Origin: Vitrella brassicaformis CCMP3155
Lineage: Eukaryota; Protista; Chromerida
Direction of reading: 5' to 3'
Length of the DNA: 64,000 bases
Assembly (NCBI GenBank): GCA_001179505.1
Contig: CDMY01000938.1
Span: 62,001 to 126,000 of the forward strand
Shown: piece after piece, positions 21,265 through 63,511 of the stretch
Position numbering within the stretch: the stretch's first letter is position 1
Layout of the letters: every line of letters begins with the position of its first letter
Position numbers and translations under genes: made by a program
The notes under the pieces: generated by a model
Told to the model about the DNA's origin: nothing
Databases searched by the model: none
What the model saw: only the letters and a program-made list of their open reading frames with translations

Positions 21265-23426
21265 TCACGCAGCCTTCTGTTTTGACACGGCGGCTGATCT
21301 GCGCGAGCAGCAGAGGCGCCTCAAACAGGCGCCAAACAGCACCACCTTCACAGACACCTGCAGATGCACACACACACACCATGTGCCCTGCCCAGATTTA
21401 TCTGCAACGAATCTGCAACGCCTGCATACAATAAATACACGGAAGGTCACGCAGCTAGCTGACCAGGAAGCATGCAGCAGCGATGAGATCCAGACCTAGC
21501 GCCCGATAGAAGGGCAGCCGCTCGGCCGGCGTCTCCCAGTGGCTGAGGTCGCCGCCCATAGAATACACGTACTCCACCAAATCTATGGGACACGGCACAA
21601 CACAACACAGCACAGCACAGCACACACCAACACACCAACACACACAATGACTGACGAGCAGAGAGAGGGTGGCATGGCCTCCCCCCTTACGAACACAAAC
21701 GCACCAGCGGCTCTCTCCACCCCTCCATAGAGCTTCATTGTCGCCTGCAGGTGTGCCGTCCTCTCAGCAAAGGAGGCGTTGGACATCACCTCAGCAATGG
21801 CGTGCCGCACGTCGGCTGCCGTCATGGTGTGCCGGTCGAGCATCAGTCCGACGCCCGCCCGTTTCAGGCGCAGCCCCACGTCGAGCTGGTCGCCAAAATG
21901 CGGAATCCCGACAATGGGTGTGCCCGCGTAGATGGCCTCATGGACGCCATTTGCACCACAGTGCGATAGGAACACCTTCACCTTTTCATGGGCCAAAGCA
22001 GCGGGGGTGGCCACCCAGGTCGCCAGGTGGAAGACATCCTCCGACGGCCACTGGTCTCTCGGGGGCAACTCGGCCCACTGTTTCTCGCCCAGCGCCCACA
22101 GCACCCGATAAGGCCGTGGGGACGGTCCACTGAAGGCTTCCATCAGTGTATGGCCCATGCGCTCCTCAATGTGCAGAAGGGAACCGAAACTGACATAGAC
22201 GACCGGGAGAGACGAGGCGTCGAGCCATTTGCGCACAGAGGGGTCGAGTCGGTCTGGCGAGAGGCTCTCTGGCCGCAGCAGGGCGCCGGTATACTGCAAA
22301 AGTGGCGGCGTGTGGAAGGGATAATCGAGGCCAGGGAAGGAGTGCACCATCTTCAGGACAGACTTCGCCCGCCTGCATCCAAACACCCACCACACGCCTC
22401 CATCCATCCATCCATCCAGCCATGGATCCATGGATCATCTCTCTGACTGAGATCGCATCGCTCATCACCTGCTCATGAGGTAAGTGAAAGGAAACTCTAG
22501 CCGCTCGCCCACCATACTCACCACCGCAAAGTACACCATCTTCGCCACCCGCTGCAGCACCGTCGGCTCATCATACGAGAAGCCCGTCATAAAGGGCGGC
22601 AGATACGGCCATGGCGGCGAGAGCATCGGCACCAAGCTCACAGTAGGGTGTGAGTAGACGGCAGGGATTTCGCGTTCGAACGCGAAATCGAACGCGGCCG
22701 ATGCCCCTATGCCCGCCAGCACCAGGTCGGGCAGATGCGTCGCGTGCGACCCGTTGAGTGGGAAGTGCTTCTCCAGACCTTTCTCCAGCGCTTTGTTCAG
22801 GTTTCTGAACACTGTGATGATGTCCAAGAAGCTCCGCAGGCCAACCTGAATGAACAAGACAACAGACACGCCGTGAGGGCCGGCATGGCATGTGCTCTGG
22901 TGGGCGAGCGACCATGAGCGACCATCCCATCTACTGCCTGTCTGTCTGCCTTTCTCACGCGGTTTGGGTCGGCCCCCCCTGTCATGTCCTCCTGGGTTAG
23001 CACGCCAAGCGAAACGAAAGTAAGTCCTGCGGCACACACGCGCACACACACGACGCACACAGAGGGAGAGGGTCACTCACATCTGGAAGGCAAGCGATCA
23101 TGGATCGTGGAGGCGGATGCACCTGTTCTCCACTTTGCTTCTGCCGAGCGGCTCAGATGTGGCAACTCGGACCTGGAGCAGAGAGAGAAGAAAGACAGAG
23201 AGAATAGGCATCCAGCTTATATGTAGTCTTAGTTTGTTTCCTTCCTTTCATTGATTACAGTGTGTCCACGCCTCTGCAGCTCTGCACCGATGTCAAGCGG
23301 CGCGTGAAGATGGCTGAATGGACTGCTGATCGCCAACACATCGAACGCTCCCGCGCCTCGAGAATGAATGAGTGCACTCATTTTGAGTGCACACCAAAGG
23401 CCTTGCAACATCGTCAGGCACCCCAT
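21265..23426 (-). CDS. UDP-glycosyltransferase (GT1/UDPGT family), membrane-anchored
   Basis: N-terminal DVLAISSPFSHLHAPLDIGAELQRRGHTV, UGT signature WVATPAALAHEKVKVFLSHCGANGVHEAIYAGTPIVGIPHFGDQ, a C-terminal hydrophobic helix (LGLDLIAAACFLVS) and tail SKQKAA*. Confidence 0.93.
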
Positions 23427-23684
23427 CAGCGCCAGATCTGCCTGCGAAAAAGACCAATTTCTTCAGTCGCTTTCCTTCCAAGCGCGCATCAGCGATCCCA
23501 TCGGGAAGGAAGCGCATTGCGTGTGAGTGTGCTGATGACGCCGAAGTGAGCCTCACCGTCAAATCCTCCTGTGGTCATTTCTCGTCGAGAACTTCGGGTG
23601 GGCGAGATTCTCTTCATCGCGAAACGACTGACTCCAGTTGATTCTCTGTCTGACGGTGTTTTGTGTTATGCTGCAGGTGATGTG

Positions 23685-26600
23685 ATGGACCCTTCGATGA
23701 TGAGCTCTCTTCAACATGACATCGCAGGCGCCTCAGCGACGCAGCAGCAGCAGCCACTCAACCGGCGAGAGGCCAACGCGTCGAGGCAGCTTGCCAGGCC
23801 CGCATTCGATACCGCTCCCAAGGACACTCTCGAGAGGAGTATGCGGCAGGGCGCCGACCGCACCCTCATCCGGCAGGCCTTCGCGGCACTCGTCGAGTCC
23901 GACGCCACGGCCAAGGACATCCGCGAGGAGGTCCTCAAGTACGCCCGTGAGGAGGGCCGCGAGCCGAAGCGATTTCTCATCTTCTCCGAGCCGCAGAGCG
24001 GCTTCCGCACCGGCGGCGACACGTACAAGAAGTACATCCCCATCTCGGTGCGGCACGTGGTCATCAACAACTCCCATGTGATCGTTGAGGGGGCCAGTGC
24101 GAGGATCATGGTGCACAAGACCGTCAAGGACGCGGACAAGGCCTATGGGGGGCGGGTGGCGGACAAGCAGACGGCGGGGGAGCCGTGGGAGGACCCCAGT
24201 GTGGTGGTGCTCAAGGTGCGGTACGTCGACGCTTCCCACCCTGACAGGGCTCAGGTCGCTGCGGCCGAGTGAGTTAAGGGTGGAGGGAGGGAGGGAGGGA
24301 GGGAGGGAGCGGGCACAGTCAATACACGAGATGGACACGGACGAGTGGGGGTGTTGTGTTGTGTTGTGTTGTGCGATTGGCTATGGTCAGGGCGTCGGGT
24401 CAGCAGGTGGCTTGGTGCAACAGCACCAGGCTGGCGGCGGCCCTCTTCGAGGACGTCACCCAGCCGTTCGCCGACCGATACCGCCGATCTGCTGCCAAGA
24501 AAGAAGACGTAAGCAAAGCAACCCGTCCGTCCTCACATCCACACACGCACGAACCACACTGATGCGACGCACAGCACATTCTCTGGTTGACCACACTGAT
24601 GCGACGCACAGCACATTCTCTGGTTTAATGTCAGGCCTCTGCTGCGCAAGACCAGCCTTCCATGCCCGCCGACCCCTCCCCCGTCCGTATCCCTCTCACC
24701 CACACCGGCGGACTAGACGCAGCCAACGCACCCAGTTCAGCGGCGGCGGCAGCTGCGTCATCCAGCCAGGAGCCTCACCCGCCCCTCCACCTCATCCCCC
24801 ACCAGCAGCAACGCAAGCGGCTGCCAATGGCCGGCGTGCGTCCCCAGCTGCTGCCCAAGCGCCAGGTGAAGGGCCGCGGCCGCCACAGCGTTGCGATGGC
24901 CCAGGTGGAGGCCGAGCCGTTCTCGCAGCGTGTGGGGCCCAAGGTGATGACAGCCGGGCTCATCCAGCGGCTCCACGACGGGTACCTCAAGAAGCGCATG
25001 ACCGAGGAGGTGGAGGCGAGCCTGGCGCAGGAGTATGGGGTGGAGGTGTCGATGGTGAAGCAGGTGCTGCGGCATTCGCTGGAGGGCTGCAAGGAGGACT
25101 TGGGGGCCTTCTGGCAGGTGGATCGCATGTTGGAAGGGGGGGCCAAGGGCAAGGCCACCTTCGACCAGGAGAGGGCCGCTTGCGAGAAACATGTATGCAA
25201 CAAACCAACGAAACACAAGCGTTAAGGGAAGTGACGCATTCATTATCCTGTTTGTGGCTGCCCGTGTGCTCAGATGGCGGCACTGCAGCTGCAGCTGCAG
25301 CAGCAGCAGCAGCCTGACCCATACGCCAACCTCTACTTCACTGATGTGAGTGTTCCCTCCCACACAGAGAGAGAGGCGCGCGCACAGCCACAGCCACAGA
25401 GATGTGTGTGTGTGTGTGTGTGTGTAGGATGCCCATTCCGAGGAGCATCATCTGCGTGTGGCCATCCAGCAGCTGTGCGAGCGTGTGCCTGGCGTCTACG
25501 GCCTCGTCCCCGACTGCGTGGCGCCTGTGCGCGAGGACTTCCGTGTGGCCATCCATACCTGCCTCCACCACTGGTCGCGACACGTGCTCGTCGAGACACA
25601 TGAAGCTGCCATGGTCAGACAGACAGACAGACAGACAGGCAGGCAGGTGACACACACATGATGTGACAGCCAGGTGCACGTGTGTGTGTTTGGGTATGTT
25701 GACTCACTTCAGAAGGCGATAAGTTTTCTGCATGAGCAGCAGGTGGTGTTGCCCGTGTTGACGTTCGTGAGGGTGACCGACCAGGTCGGCGACCCCGACA
25801 TCGACTCCAAACGCTTGTATGTAAAGACAGACAGACAAAAAGAAGAGAAGAGGCCGTGCCGTGCCGTCTCTTGCTTGCAAGGATGATATGATCAATCCAT
25901 CCATCAGGTTGCCGCGGCCCACTGGTGACGGCGTGTGGCCGGCCGTGCAGGTGTGCCAGTTCCACACACCGCACATCAGCATGTTCTTCGAGGTACACAG
26001 ATACCGAGCACAGCACGCTCAGGCAGCAAGACGGCCACCCAACATGGGTCTCTCTGTGTGTGTGTCGCTTGCCCTGCAGCGTCTGCTGTTCAATTTGATC
26101 ATCTGCGAGACCGTCGATCTGTGCCACCAGCTGGCAAAGTGAGCAAGCAGGAGACAGACAGACACGTACCGAAGAACAGACGACACGCACACGGACAACG
26201 CAATGTGCTCCCCTCCCCTCTCCTTGTCCGCAGGTCGCCCGTGTACGGGAGCGGCGGGTGGCTGTACGTGTCCAAGGACGGCCATATGGTGCAGAACTCC
26301 TATGCTGCGGCCCACCCCATGCAGCAACAGCTGCACCCCCATGGCCATCATGACCACCCCCCGCCACACGCATCTCCACAGCACGTCGGTGCCCCTCGCG
26401 CAGATCTGCACCAGCCGGACCCACACGCGCATGCCATCCCCCCAATGTCGCAGGGGACCCACCCTGACCCTGTGGCTGCTCATTCTGGCGCCGCTGCAGC
26501 TGCTGCGGCGCATCCGGGACATGCACATGTGGCACACCACCATGGTGCTGCTGCTGCTGCTGCTGCTGGGGTCAGTCCGATGGTAAGGATGCGCGCAGAC

Positions 26601-26736
26601 ATCGTCTGTCCGATCTGAGCGAGTGGGCACACGAGCGTGCGCATGTATGTGTGTCTGTGTGTTGTGTGTGCAGGGGGTGGGGCACGCTGCGGCCATGTTG
26701 CAGAAGGCCGACCTGGTGCCGCTGCCGCACGGCTGA
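23685..26736 (+). CDS. Uncharacterised ~730-aa protein containing a stand-alone SMC hinge domain
   Basis: Ten exons join in frame. Exons 25428-26300 encode VYGLVPDCVAPVREDFRVAIHTCLHHWSRHVLVETHEAAMKAISFLHEQQ..LTFVRV...AVQVCQFHTPHISMFFERLLFNLIICETVDLCHQLAK..YVSKDGHMVQ, collinear with the recalled SMC1 hinge. No Walker A/B motif or long coiled coil was seen. Confidence 0.7.
24553..24625. repeat. Perfect tandem duplication (37-bp period) inside an intron
   Basis: accacactgatgcgacgcacagcacattctctggtt occurs at 24553 and 24590. Confidence 0.95.
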
Positions 26737-27196
26737 TGCATTCATTCTGTGTAAAGGCTAGTGACCGAATCCGTGCATGGGGAATGGGATGCACGCAGAG
26801 CAGCAGCTAGCTCCGGCAGACATACTGCTCTCGTCTGTGAGCCGAGCAGAGTGGACGGACTGACTGAGTGAATTGCACAGCACATGAAGGGGACCATTGA
26901 TCGCAGTAAGTCCAGGCATCGCCAGTTCACGAGTCGAACTTCATTGCACAAACCACATAGGCCGGCACACATGCATGAACGTTGCACCGCATTGCACCAG
27001 CTGGGGGGGAAGCTGCAATCATGCCGTCAGATCAGATCAGTCATTCTCCATTCATTGACCGATCGATCACTTCTCGCATCGGTTGCTCTCAGGCAGCCGT
27101 CGCTTGCCCCAGAACTCGCAGCCAAAGATGCCTGCAGGAGTCGCAATGTAATCGAGAAGAGCTTTTGGAGCTTTTGTGACGTGTTTCCACAGTGGA

Positions 27197-28347
27197 TCAT
27201 CCATTTGACCGACCGTAGTAGTCTTTCTCAGGGTTGAAATCTGAGCAATGCATACGAAACAGATCGCATCCATGCGGCATCTCTCACAGATATATGTGAT
27301 GTGATGTGATGTGATGCGATGTGGTGACCCCCCCACCTGGGGGCACGGGGATGGGTGGGATGGTGTACTTGGCTGAGGCCAGGGTGAGGAACTCGTTGAG
27401 CGTCTCGCCCACCTCCTCAACCTCCTCTAATTGACGCTCGGGACGCTGCAACACACACACACACACACACACCTGCAGGCTATGACGACTCCCTTGCGCA
27501 GCGGTAAGGCCTTCACTGACTTGTGAGATGACGGCTTCTCGCAGCTCCGCGAGATGGCCTTTGAGCAGCAGAGGCAGCAGGCGGAGCCGCTCTGTCTTGG
27601 TCGTGTCCTCGAGGTCAATCTTGGCAGACAAGGTCTCCATTTTCTGTGTTAACACACACACACACACACGCACACATCAAGGAGAACTAATTTCCCTGCC
27701 TCCCGTCCCGTCGGTACCTCTTGCATGGGCCTTTAGTACACACACACAGACAGACAGACAGCCAGACAGACAACAGAGCGAGAGCAGAGTGAGGCTTGTC
27801 CACCAACCCACACTGACATGTCAGACATCCACTAGGTACCAACCTGACCTGTAGTAGATGCCTAAGAAGTTGGCCACCGTGCCGCTGTCGTACGTCCCGC
27901 CCTTGAGCTTGCCTGTCTTGAGCTTGTCCAGGATCTTGAGCACATACGGACGGTAGTCGGCGATCTCACCCACCGCCCTCTCGATTTTCTGCTCCTCGCT
28001 CTCGAAGAAGGGCAAACTGATGGCCGATGAAGGGCTCGGAGAGGCCAGCAGGGAAGGGGCGACAAGTGAGCCGAGAGCGATAGAGAGCATCCGCCTGCGT
28101 GGGAGAGTGGACGACTCATCGGCCGTCATCTTGAGCAGTGACGATGATGGCGCGCGGCGGAGAGCGTGACGGAGGCCCATGTGAGAGGCTGAAGGGCTGA
28201 TGAAGGCCTGCAGCAACGCACACTCGCAACATAACAACATGACATGAGATAGATGAGTCAGCCAACTGCGTCCATCACGAGCCTTCATACGTCATGCGAT
28301 GATACTGCGCCGATGGCGCAAAGCATAACAAAGACACCTCTCAGCAT
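27197..28347 (-). CDS. Plastid thylakoid-lumen protein, PsbQ/CyanoQ-like four-helix bundle
   Basis: Signal peptide MLRGVFVMLCAIGAVSSHD|AF, transit peptide, and Tat signal PRRRMLSIALGSLVAPSLLASPSPSSA. Mature helices include KGHLAELREAVISQ|RPERQLEEVEEVGETLNEFLTLA, compared with recalled CyanoQ FGHLERLDAAAKDRN..FDSFLNL. Confidence 0.65.
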
Positions 28348-28534
28348 CTTCACCTTTCGGCCGCACGCGAAGGTGTAGATCTTGCTTTGACGTGCTTCAC
28401 AGCGGCTCACACGTCGATTAAGTCGAATCAAATTGCACGTATGGGTCTCGCCTACAGGCGGTACACGGGTGCACTAAGGCAATGTCGAGTGTTTACGGGG
28501 GACGAGGCAAGAGATGTTGTCAGGTTTTTCGGCG
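28348..28534. promoter_or_regulatory. Probable compact bidirectional promoter (PsbQ-like / acid phosphatase)
   Basis: 187 bp between divergent ATGs. Confidence 0.5.
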
Positions 28535-60834: not shown

Positions 60835-63511
60835 ATGTCCGAGGGTTTCATTTGTCCTTTCTCACCCGGGGGGAAGCAATTTCAATGTCATGGTGACCGC
60901 GAGGCAGATCTCGATGTGGTCAGCATCTTACCCAATCCGCACACGACTGACCGAATCGACGAAGGCGAGATGGCTGCCGACTGGCCCATAGTGACAGTCC
61001 CCCAGAACAACCAATGGCATCAGGACGATACCGACACAGAAGAAGGAGGCAACACCAGAGGGGCTCAGCCTGTGAGACCGCCGCAATCACCTGGAGATGC
61101 CAACCAGCCAACCGCCGTCTCGACAGTGTCGCTTACTCTCTCGCCTTCAGTCAGCCTGTAAACCGAGGAGAGAAACACAACAGCAGCCGGAGCAGGTAAC
61201 AACGTCCTCACGACCACAGCTGACGAGTATAGACGAGTGTCGGTCACCTCGACCACGTCACAAAGTGGGACAGCAAGTAAGACAAGCGTCACAGCCGGCA
61301 GCAAGCGACGCACGGAGGAAGATGCCGAAGCAAAGGGTTCAGGCATGCGTCCTGAGGAGCAGGCGTTGGCTGCGTTGGTCCATGAGTTCAGGTGCCACTA
61401 AAGTCATCCCCATCTGTGCAAATGGACGCCCCTCACTTTGGCGTGTTCTTCAGGGAGGCGGCGGGCTGTGAAGCCGCCTACGAAGAGTGGCCCACAACAC
61501 TCGATTACAAGACGATCCATCGGTCGGATGGCACAAAAAAAGAGGTGCTTGTCGGCGTGAGCTTTCAGCTCGAGCCTCTATGGACAACAGTCAAAAGAGT
61601 TTATATGGGCCTTCTTGAGCACCTAGCAGGAGCTCTTTTTATTGCCATCCTCCTCATCGTCTTTGGTCTAATTTATGCATACTCGTGTCGCTCAAGCCTC
61701 TTTGGTGGGCCTAATCTTTGTGTATTTGCCATGGATAGACCTCATTCTTGTGGTGATTCTCATGTTAGGCCCACTATTTGACGTCATCCGTCGAGTCGCA
61801 ATCGTTGGATCGTGGATATTGACGCACGCTCTGGTGACGGGCGGATGCCGATTTCCTAGCATTATGTCTCGGCGGAAGAAAGAGTGCCACTGGGTCGTCT
61901 TTATACCGGCGGTTGCGCTCTCTCTCGTTATTTCTATCAGCCACCAGCTCCATTTCGATGGTCAATGGAGAAAAAATGTCGTCGGACCCATCTTGTGGAG
62001 CTCATATCTAGTGAGCACATATGTTTACTTCCGTCGCGCTGCTGGGTCACGTGGATATGCGGTGAAAGCCACGGTGGTTTTTGCGATGACACTAGCTATG
62101 AAAATCGTGTGGGTCAACGTCCTTTCGCCTCGATTTTACGCTGATGATTTGAATATTCGTGACCTTCGGCGATTTCAGATGGCCCTCATATACCTGGCCA
62201 CCTTCTTCCCTGCTGTTCTCCTAGGTACTCATGCGTCAGAGCTACTTGATGCTACAGTGTGTGGCACTTTTGATTGCACATTTGTTTTTCATTAGTCAAT
62301 AAGCTTGTGCGCTCAATCAAAGTAAAGTCCACAGCCAATGACAAACACTCGAGTTCTTCGTTATGATCCAATGTGTATTCAGGAGGGAGATCCCACGTGT
62401 AATTCGCTGCTTATTGGAGTACCAGCGACGGTCTACATACTCTACCCACGCATGCTGCAAGCGGAGGTCGTCGGACTTAACAAGAAGCTCGTCTTCTCAG
62501 TTGCAATTGCCATGTAAAAGCGGCACGAAGCTCTAGCTGCTTGTCCACATCGTTCGTGCCTGCCGTTTTTCAGATTTGATCTAGTCACGGACGTCTCGCC
62601 GCCTTATTGTATCTGCGTGGATCAGCATTTGCGTCTCCCTCAATCTCATGCTTGTCTCCTTCTGTGTGTATGTATATTATCAGTTATCCTGCTATACCTG
62701 TCCGCCAAAAGAGGTTTCTCATGGCTCGCTACAAGAAGAAAAGGACGTTCACTGAGAACTTGACGGACATCAGGGTGCCTACAGCGAGAGAGGGGACAGC
62801 TGATCGATCACTCGGACAGACGGACAGCGATGCCACAGAGAGTCAGCACCAGAAGAGAAGGAAGAGCCAGATGCTGAGAGGCCAAAGCTCAATCATAACG
62901 GCAGCCATCTCGACTGCAGAACTGTCTCTTACCAGTAAACGGCTATGTCCCGAACCTGCAGGAGGGCTTCAGTCGGCCTTGGCCTCTCTTCAGGTGTCTC
63001 CACGGTAATTGCGGTGATGGTGTACCGGCGCTACGGGAATATAAAAATGTGACGTGTTTCTATAGGTCTCTTCGCGGCCTGGGGGATCAAATCATCATGT
63101 GGTCGGGCGCCGAGTTGGTCGCTCCGCTATTCACAAACTTGAGCGTACTGGTTGCCCAAGCCTTGAAAGGAGTATCATGGGAGGTACTGATAGGAGAATC
63201 GGCAGGGCTCGTGGTGCTGGTGCTCATTGAACTTGTACAACCGACCACACACAACATGACTATACCAATACCACACGCAGTATACGCAAGACTTTCTTTT
63301 ATGTATGTCTGATGAATGCGACATGCAGGTGTTCGAGCTGTGTGTGGCGTGTTTGATGATGAGGTGGAACAACATACCAATCCTGTCCGGGCGTGAAAGA
63401 GGAGTCGTTCGCTGCAGGATACTGACCTCTTTCTTGGCTGCTTTCTGCTGGTTAGCCATACCTTTCTTTCGCATGAATGACCGACAAACAAACAATTACG
63501 TATTCCCCCTA

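Follow-up and report, generated by a model that had tools for sequence, protein, structure and literature searches.

A self-contained, spliced gene for a protein with a putative SMC-hinge-like domain and without ATPase heads in Vitrella brassicaformis

SMC hinges are nearly always found within large ATP-driven chromosome-folding motors, and a locus of the chromerid Vitrella brassicaformis CCMP3155 raises the question of whether such a domain may also be used there on its own. The locus lies on contig CDMY01000938.1 (GenBank assembly GCA_001179505.1), in a stretch of 64,000 nucleotides (positions 62,001 to 126,000 of the forward strand) that is referred to here as the window and whose own numbering is used throughout. 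A first-pass annotation had proposed at positions 23685-26736 a single spliced open reading frame (ORF) of about 730 amino acids with an SMC1-like hinge, and without ATPase heads or a long coiled coil. The analysis described here has revealed that the gene is real and self-contained, a single transcription unit that encodes neither ATPase heads nor long arms, and that the first part of the proposed hinge is similar to SMC hinges; the region as a whole is regarded, with fair confidence, as hinge-derived or hinge-like and strongly diverged.

To our knowledge, a hinge is used in the absence of an SMC head by only a few proteins (SMCHD1, GMI1 and DMS3), and all of these are chromatin silencing factors. 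Hinge proteins lacking SMC heads are already known, and what is new here is the architecture and the lineage. One more hinge-only protein, if built independently of these, would make clear that the hinge is a module open to reuse, in this case joined to a possible DNA-binding helix-turn-helix (HTH) in an alga that lives freely and is related to the parasitic apicomplexans; it would also provide an entry point to the organisation of chromatin in a lineage with poorly known factors. This value is limited for now, the hinge fold being putative and no orthologs being known.

A single spliced gene without SMC heads and arms

A three-frame reading of positions 23500-26900, combined with a splice-site search, has given ten coding exons on the plus strand, from the ATG at 23685 to the TGA at 26734-26736. 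Each of the nine coding introns is of the GT-AG type and keeps the frame, and the coding sequence (2178 nt) encodes a product of 725 amino acids. Public sequencing runs were placed on positions 22800-28400 to test this gene model. Spliced contigs that support the exon junctions were found in two runs from separate studies (X6 and X1), and the contigs of another run (X2) over the same interval were genomic and unspliced. Record 12 of X6 (6646 nt) is composed of pieces placed at 23257-23596, 23676-24268, 24635-25192, 25434-25608, 26234-26532 and 26673-27130, and the letters between pieces (118, 78, 253 and 49) have the exact lengths of the intervening exons. Explicit GT..AG joints were read at 23596->23676, 25816->25908, 25990->26078 and 26138->26234, all but the first of them being present in X1 as well as in X6.

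The N-terminal and hinge parts, which had been assigned to one gene, are indeed connected by a chain of plus-strand GT..AG junctions that runs from the 5' untranslated region (UTR) through exon 10. No splice junction leaves the locus in the RNA contigs over 22800-28400; no transcripts joining the hinge exons to head or coiled-coil exons were found, and beyond the locus only opposite-strand neighbours are joined. An initial boundary between exons 6 and 7 (25820/25882) was ruled out by the RNA junctions, which place the end of exon 6 at 25816 and the start of exon 7 at 25908, and the product is ten codons shorter than in the naive model. With this correction, the annotated frame of about 730 residues is present with 725.

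The Walker A, Walker B and LSGG-type ABC signature motifs are absent from every exon, as had been annotated, and Walker A and the ABC signature are absent from all frames of 23000-27200. Family, PDB and profile searches were all run on single exons. The SMC_N and AAA families of Pfam were not matched by exons 1, 2, 3, 5, 6, 7 and 9 (exons 4, 8 and 10 are too short for the scan), and SMC_N was recovered at E<1e-48 in control bacterial SMCs. A GHKL ATPase of the SMCHD1/GMI1 type is likewise absent from the Pfam results: no family was matched by exon 1 or exon 3 with E<=1, or by exon 2 with E<=10. No exon has more than 34 consecutive amino acids free of Pro and Gly, whereas the helix of an SMC arm is mostly unbroken and far longer; a long coiled coil is therefore excluded, in agreement with the annotation. 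The region C-terminal of the hinge is rich in His, Pro and Ala instead of forming a second coiled-coil arm. Furthermore, close opposite-strand genes on both sides leave no space for exons encoding an SMC head or arm.

Similarity of the central region to SMC hinges

The hinge-like domain, annotated at 25428-26300, comprises approximately residues 458-612 (about 155 residues) and is split over five exons. Exon 5 (25428-25613, residues 445-506) encodes a short entry helix and then the first part of the domain (VPGVYG...AIHTCL...). This exon (62 residues) matched SMC_hinge (PF06470) with an E-value of 0.0058 and 17.5 bits over profile positions 2-42 of 116, and SMC_hinge was its sole match among 24,736 Pfam families. 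When exon 5 was compared with the PDB (177,635 sequences, E<=10), the four matches obtained were all SMC hinges, namely the SMC4 hinge 3l51_B (E=0.018), 4u4p_B (0.039), Smc 5h69 (0.29) and Smc1 7ogt (0.39), with mouse and human SMC4, bacterial Smc and yeast Smc1 as sources. The best-scoring SMC paralogue is SMC4, the score differences among paralogues not being meaningful, and the similarity is too low for any paralogue, SMC1 or other, to be named. Thus, the annotated hinge stands as an SMC-hinge-like similarity, seen in the Pfam and PDB matches of exon 5 and in the colinearity of the exons, and its assignment to SMC1 in particular is not supported.

The remaining hinge exons gave little in the libraries. 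Exons 6, 7 and 9 searched singly produced nothing meaningful in Pfam, NCBIfam or the PDB, the PDB matches of exons 6, 7 and the first part of exon 9 (exon 9a) being chance alignments to designed repeat proteins. Neither a PDB search nor a word search with the stop-free frame containing exons 7 and 8 gave any match, and NCBIfam had none for the hinge exons.

A dedicated profile has also been used. Bacterial SMC loci were retrieved by a Walker A DNA pattern (three were verified with Pfam), a hinge alignment and a hidden Markov model (HMM) were made from 40 bacterial SMC sequences, and hmmsearch was run exon by exon. Exon 5 fell on HMM positions 51-97 with 8.0 bits, a score that was reached by none of 2000 shuffles. 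Exon 7 (25908-25992, residues 541-569), in which the second hinge half begins (GDGVWPAVQVCQF), fell on positions 137-148 (GVWPAVQVCQF vs Gagvasdlvsa). Exon 8 (26080-26138, residues 570-589) fell on positions 157-169, RLLFNLIICETVD being aligned to sLLgrvvvvddld and fitting the hinge motif sLLG.vvVvddld. Exon 9a (26234-26303, residues 589-612), with which the hinge-like domain ends, carries VSKDGHMVQNSY at the place of VTLDG....G...GG and fell on positions 185-195 (VSKDGHMVQNS vs VTldGdvlnpg). Exons 5, 7, 8 and 9 are therefore found on the hinge HMM in the canonical order, exons 7, 8 and 9 each being weak alone. The expected remainder of the first hinge half (AISFLHEQQ..LPVLTF) lies in exon 6 (25713-25816, residues 507-541), and the junctions of exons 7 and 8, including that between exons 6 and 7, are present in both X1 and X6.

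Fisher combination of the shuffle p-values of the exons gave 4e-6, or 4e-4 without exon 5. As shuffle p-values overstate significance in comparison with windows of real peptides, conditional sub-HMM and colinear chain tests were used instead. Several exons were not separable from background in the real-peptide controls. In the conditional test, in which the expected sub-profile was confronted with real bacterial and own-gene peptides, p-values of 0.008-0.04 for exon 7 and about 0.007 for exon 8 were obtained, and exons 6 and 9a did not reach significance. With hhalign, P was 0.0011 for exon 5, 0.011 for exon 8 and 0.052 for exon 9a, with 0.3-0.5 for the control exons 1 and 3, and exons 6 and 7 were not significant. 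The colinear chain score had a p-value of about 0.001 when compared to 6000 real non-SMC protein segments cut to the same piece lengths, after 11 truncated SMC ORFs had been removed from the controls.

As in canonical SMC proteins (bacterial Smc and SMC1-6), the first hinge segment shows the pattern PGV.G...AI..L and the second half the patterns LL...+V..+D and V(T/S).DG, with the same order and spacing, in a domain of about 155 residues, and from these similarities we infer a hinge fold for the whole domain. Unlike those proteins, the Vitrella protein has neither ABC ATPase head halves nor 300-residue coiled-coil arms, its terminal G...GG, GRATFLP and ALG positions are replaced, and its architecture consists of an orphan N-terminal domain, an HTH-like segment, the hinge-like domain and a His/Pro/Ala tail.

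Several results weigh against the explanation that is preferred below. The search with PF06470, which had been proposed as a check, does retrieve the SMC_hinge family with exon 5, but the score of 17.5 bits is below the curated gathering threshold of 22.5 bits. Taken singly, exons 6 and 9a fail to reach significance, which exon 7 reaches only in the conditional test. Other residues stand in place of the consensus hinge motifs ALG and GRATFLP and of the terminal glycines; when VSKDGHMVQNSYAAAH is aligned to VTldGdvlnpggsitgG, the first Gly alone is retained and the other terminal glycines are absent, as described in the annotation, which had noted KDGHMVQNSY in place of G..GG. The terminal hinge glycines matter for dimerisation, according to mutational work on bacterial SMC, and a classical hinge dimer is doubtful because the conserved hinge residues, these glycines included, have been replaced. 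In addition, no orthologs were found with which conservation or purifying selection might be demonstrated.

Possible role of the protein and alternative explanations

The explanation preferred, with a probability of roughly one half, is an ATP-independent nuclear adaptor whose hinge-like module would serve for dimerisation and/or nucleic-acid binding, assisted by the HTH-like segment. In this model, a lineage-restricted nuclear protein of 725 residues would retain a divergent SMC-hinge-like domain as a self-standing module, used as a platform for dimerisation and/or nucleic-acid binding as are the hinges of SMC proteins, SMCHD1 and DMS3. The three-helix HTH-like segment and a basic patch similar to a nuclear localisation signal (NLS) would direct the protein into the nucleus and to the DNA there, partners may be recruited by the orphan N-terminal domain and the His/Pro/Ala-rich tail, and the protein would act as an adaptor or bridging factor and not as a loop-extruding motor. 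Dimerisation, DNA binding, nuclear location and a chromatin role are what we infer from this combination of parts.

Both candidate targeting elements are encoded by exon 3 (24635-25192, residues 235-420), which begins with a low-complexity A/S/P/Q linker and continues into a helical domain. A bipartite NLS-like motif, KRLPMAGVRPQLLPKRQVK, was found by regular expression in the linker (24815-24871, plus strand, residues 295-313), with a putative function in nuclear import. In the 100 C-terminal residues of the exon short helices were predicted, with a mean predicted local distance difference test (pLDDT) of 63 and 70-83 in the core. This three-helix HTH-like core (24953-25084, plus strand, residues 341-384) contains EASLAQEYGVEVSMVKQVLRH, the segment that had been annotated as HTH-like and that is covered by a predicted helix-turn-helix (EEVEASLAQEY-GVE-VSMVKQVLRH). 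Its top structural matches were homeodomains and Tc3 or resolvase HTHs, and the predicted three-helix core with its helix-turn-helix is like that of homeodomain-like or transposase-type HTHs. The C-terminal part of exon 3 retrieved only CENP-B_N in Pfam (E=0.21), and in NCBIfam the HTH region had weak matches to ribosomal protein S25e, a phosphorylase and sigma-54. The HTH-like segment and the bipartite NLS-like motif, both predicted, would fit a nuclear, nucleic-acid-binding role.

The closest known systems differ from this protein in their remaining parts. DMS3, a component of the DDR complex of RNA-directed DNA methylation, is plant-specific, much smaller and has a coiled coil before its hinge. 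The protein described here is like DMS3 in having a hinge-like domain without an ATPase, a likeness of architecture, and unlike it in the flanking parts. DMS3 is considered a hinge protein without ATPase motif that is thought to be an adaptor working with ATPase partners (PMC5651269). SMCHD1 in animals and GMI1 in plants have an SMC-type hinge outside the SMC ATPase context, with functions in dimerisation and chromatin binding (PMC5651269, PMC4628070). Unlike the Vitrella protein, in which no such domain was detected in exons 1-3, they carry an N-terminal GHKL ATPase and have about 2000 residues.

A decayed relic is unlikely: a duplicated SMC fragment would have been captured into a lineage-specific and largely disordered protein, no longer folding or working as a hinge, and any function would lie elsewhere. 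The clear hinge likeness is limited to about 45 residues of exon 5, the key conserved residues have disappeared, as have the terminal glycines, and much of the protein is of low complexity, the remainder having no relatives in the searches made. However, the later exons keep the right order and the expected motifs, the length of the domain (about 155 residues) is right, and the frame is kept over five short exons in a gene that is spliced and expressed.

It is improbable that the region is not a hinge at all, the likeness of exon 5 being due to chance or to a convergent helix-strand motif in an unrelated fold. Single scores are indeed sub-threshold (17.5 vs 22.5 bits, with a best PDB E-value of 0.018), and several exons are background against real-peptide controls, but independent libraries (Pfam and the PDB) agree on one family with no competing match, and the chain test (p about 0.001) and the Fisher combination (4e-6, or 4e-4 without exon 5) argue for a hinge.

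A modulator of SMC complexes has also been considered, in which the hinge-like domain would pair with a canonical SMC hinge (cohesin, condensin or SMC5/6), capping it or competing with it to regulate DNA entry or assembly, with no homodimer being formed. SMC hinges heterodimerise naturally, and SMC5 and SMC6, as candidate canonical partners, have both been reported in Vitrella brassicaformis (PMC8665677); the gene itself is therefore probably none of the canonical genes. The loss of the glycine motif in one partner could favour asymmetric pairing, but the low similarity does not point to a particular paralogue as the partner. This explanation is given a small chance.

A slim chance is given to an alveolate counterpart of plant DMS3, in which dimers of the ATPase-less hinge protein would pass DNA or RNA on to an ATPase on another protein, of the GHKL/MORC type or other, in a silencing pathway. 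If true, the split design with a hinge acting in trans would have arisen independently outside plants. No paper on a hinge-only protein in chromerids, or on a hinge partner of apicomplexan MORC, was found in the literature.

Finally, a mis-modelled fragment of a full-length SMC gene, or two genes read as one, is hardly credible: one assembled contig over a locus does not prove one molecule, as a general caveat, but the plus-strand GT..AG chain runs from the 5' UTR to exon 10 with only CT..AC opposite-strand neighbours beyond it, the ATG of the upstream gene is 259 nt away, and there is no P-loop in any frame of 23000-27200.

Other parts of the gene and its neighbourhood

The 5' UTR exon ends at 23597, overlapping the 5' end of a divergent glycosyltransferase gene, and contains no in-frame ATG after its last stop. 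It is followed by a GT..AG intron of 79 nt (23598-23676, plus strand), whose joint 23596->23676 (cut +1) is present in X6 record 12. A minimal upstream ORF (ATG TGA, 23680-23685) in the spliced 5' UTR shares one base with the main start codon.

Exon 1 (23677-24268, coding from the ATG at 23685) encodes residues 1-194 plus 2 nt, an orphan N-terminal region with about 44 disordered residues followed by a predicted alpha/beta segment. No match was found for exon 1 in Pfam or NCBIfam; a HMMER search against 1.84 billion representatives gave 0 matches and did not retrieve the protein itself, the library lacking the proteins of this genome, so that no claim on an absence of relatives among alveolates can be based on it. 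The ESM Atlas gave no usable match for exon 1 or the HTH region, and metagenome scans with exon 1 retrieved nothing. Two metagenome loci from the scan with exon 5 (L121 and L122) were discarded as chance, the matches of 24 and 17 residues lying in a transporter-like and another bacterial-looking ORF. The AlphaFold2 single-sequence model of exon 1 (pLDDT 37.7) was unusable.

Exon 2 (24391-24508, residues 195-234) encodes an Ala/Arg-rich linker and is defined by its GT-AG borders and frame, with the matching 118-nt gap in X6 record 12, and exon 4 (25274-25345, residues 421-444) encodes a Gln/Leu-rich linker. The remainder of exon 9 (26304-26582, residues 613-705) encodes the low-complexity His/Pro/Ala-rich tail that had been annotated downstream of the hinge and is present there, with 18 His in 89 residues; the composition of the whole exon 9 is 22% A, 17% H and 14% P. 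Exon 10 (26674-26736) encodes residues 706-725 and the stop codon, and the 3' UTR continues beyond 26867, overlapping the convergent downstream gene.

Intron 7 (25993-26079, 87 nt) is in frame and stop-free, and its retention would add 29 residues between the second-half hinge motifs with the ORF intact. A (GT)n tract precedes the acceptor of intron 4 (25403-25425), and CAGA/ACAG repeats are found just after the donors of introns 5 and 6 (25614-25640 and 25821-25840), which together make a polarised pattern.

The upstream neighbour is a UDP-glycosyltransferase-like gene on the minus strand (21583-23426, Pfam UDPGT, E=2e-26). It is arranged head-to-head with the hinge gene, with the start of its first coding ORF at 23426 and an ATG-to-ATG distance of 259 nt, and the two 5' UTRs overlap enough for the RNA contigs to merge, which suggests a shared bidirectional promoter region. 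The X6 contig extends both ways into CT..AC-joined sequence, corresponding to introns of minus-strand genes. The downstream neighbour is a convergent gene on the minus strand (26867-28400), with a transcript end near 26867 (X8 record 13), CT..AC introns at 27130-27213, 27240-27337 and 28206-28290, and a 3' end that overlaps the 3' UTR of the hinge gene. It had no Pfam match; its N-terminal ORF has a twin-arginine-like signal (RRRMLSIALG), which suggests a plastid-lumen protein and a phototrophic host.

In all four runs, k-mer depth spikes were observed at 27662-27848 (up to 3,700-29,000, vs about 20-140 elsewhere), with a smaller spike in intron 1 (24296-24482), and many loose contig ends were located at 24351-24373 and 27738-27772. 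These sites look like short dispersed repeats common to many other loci.

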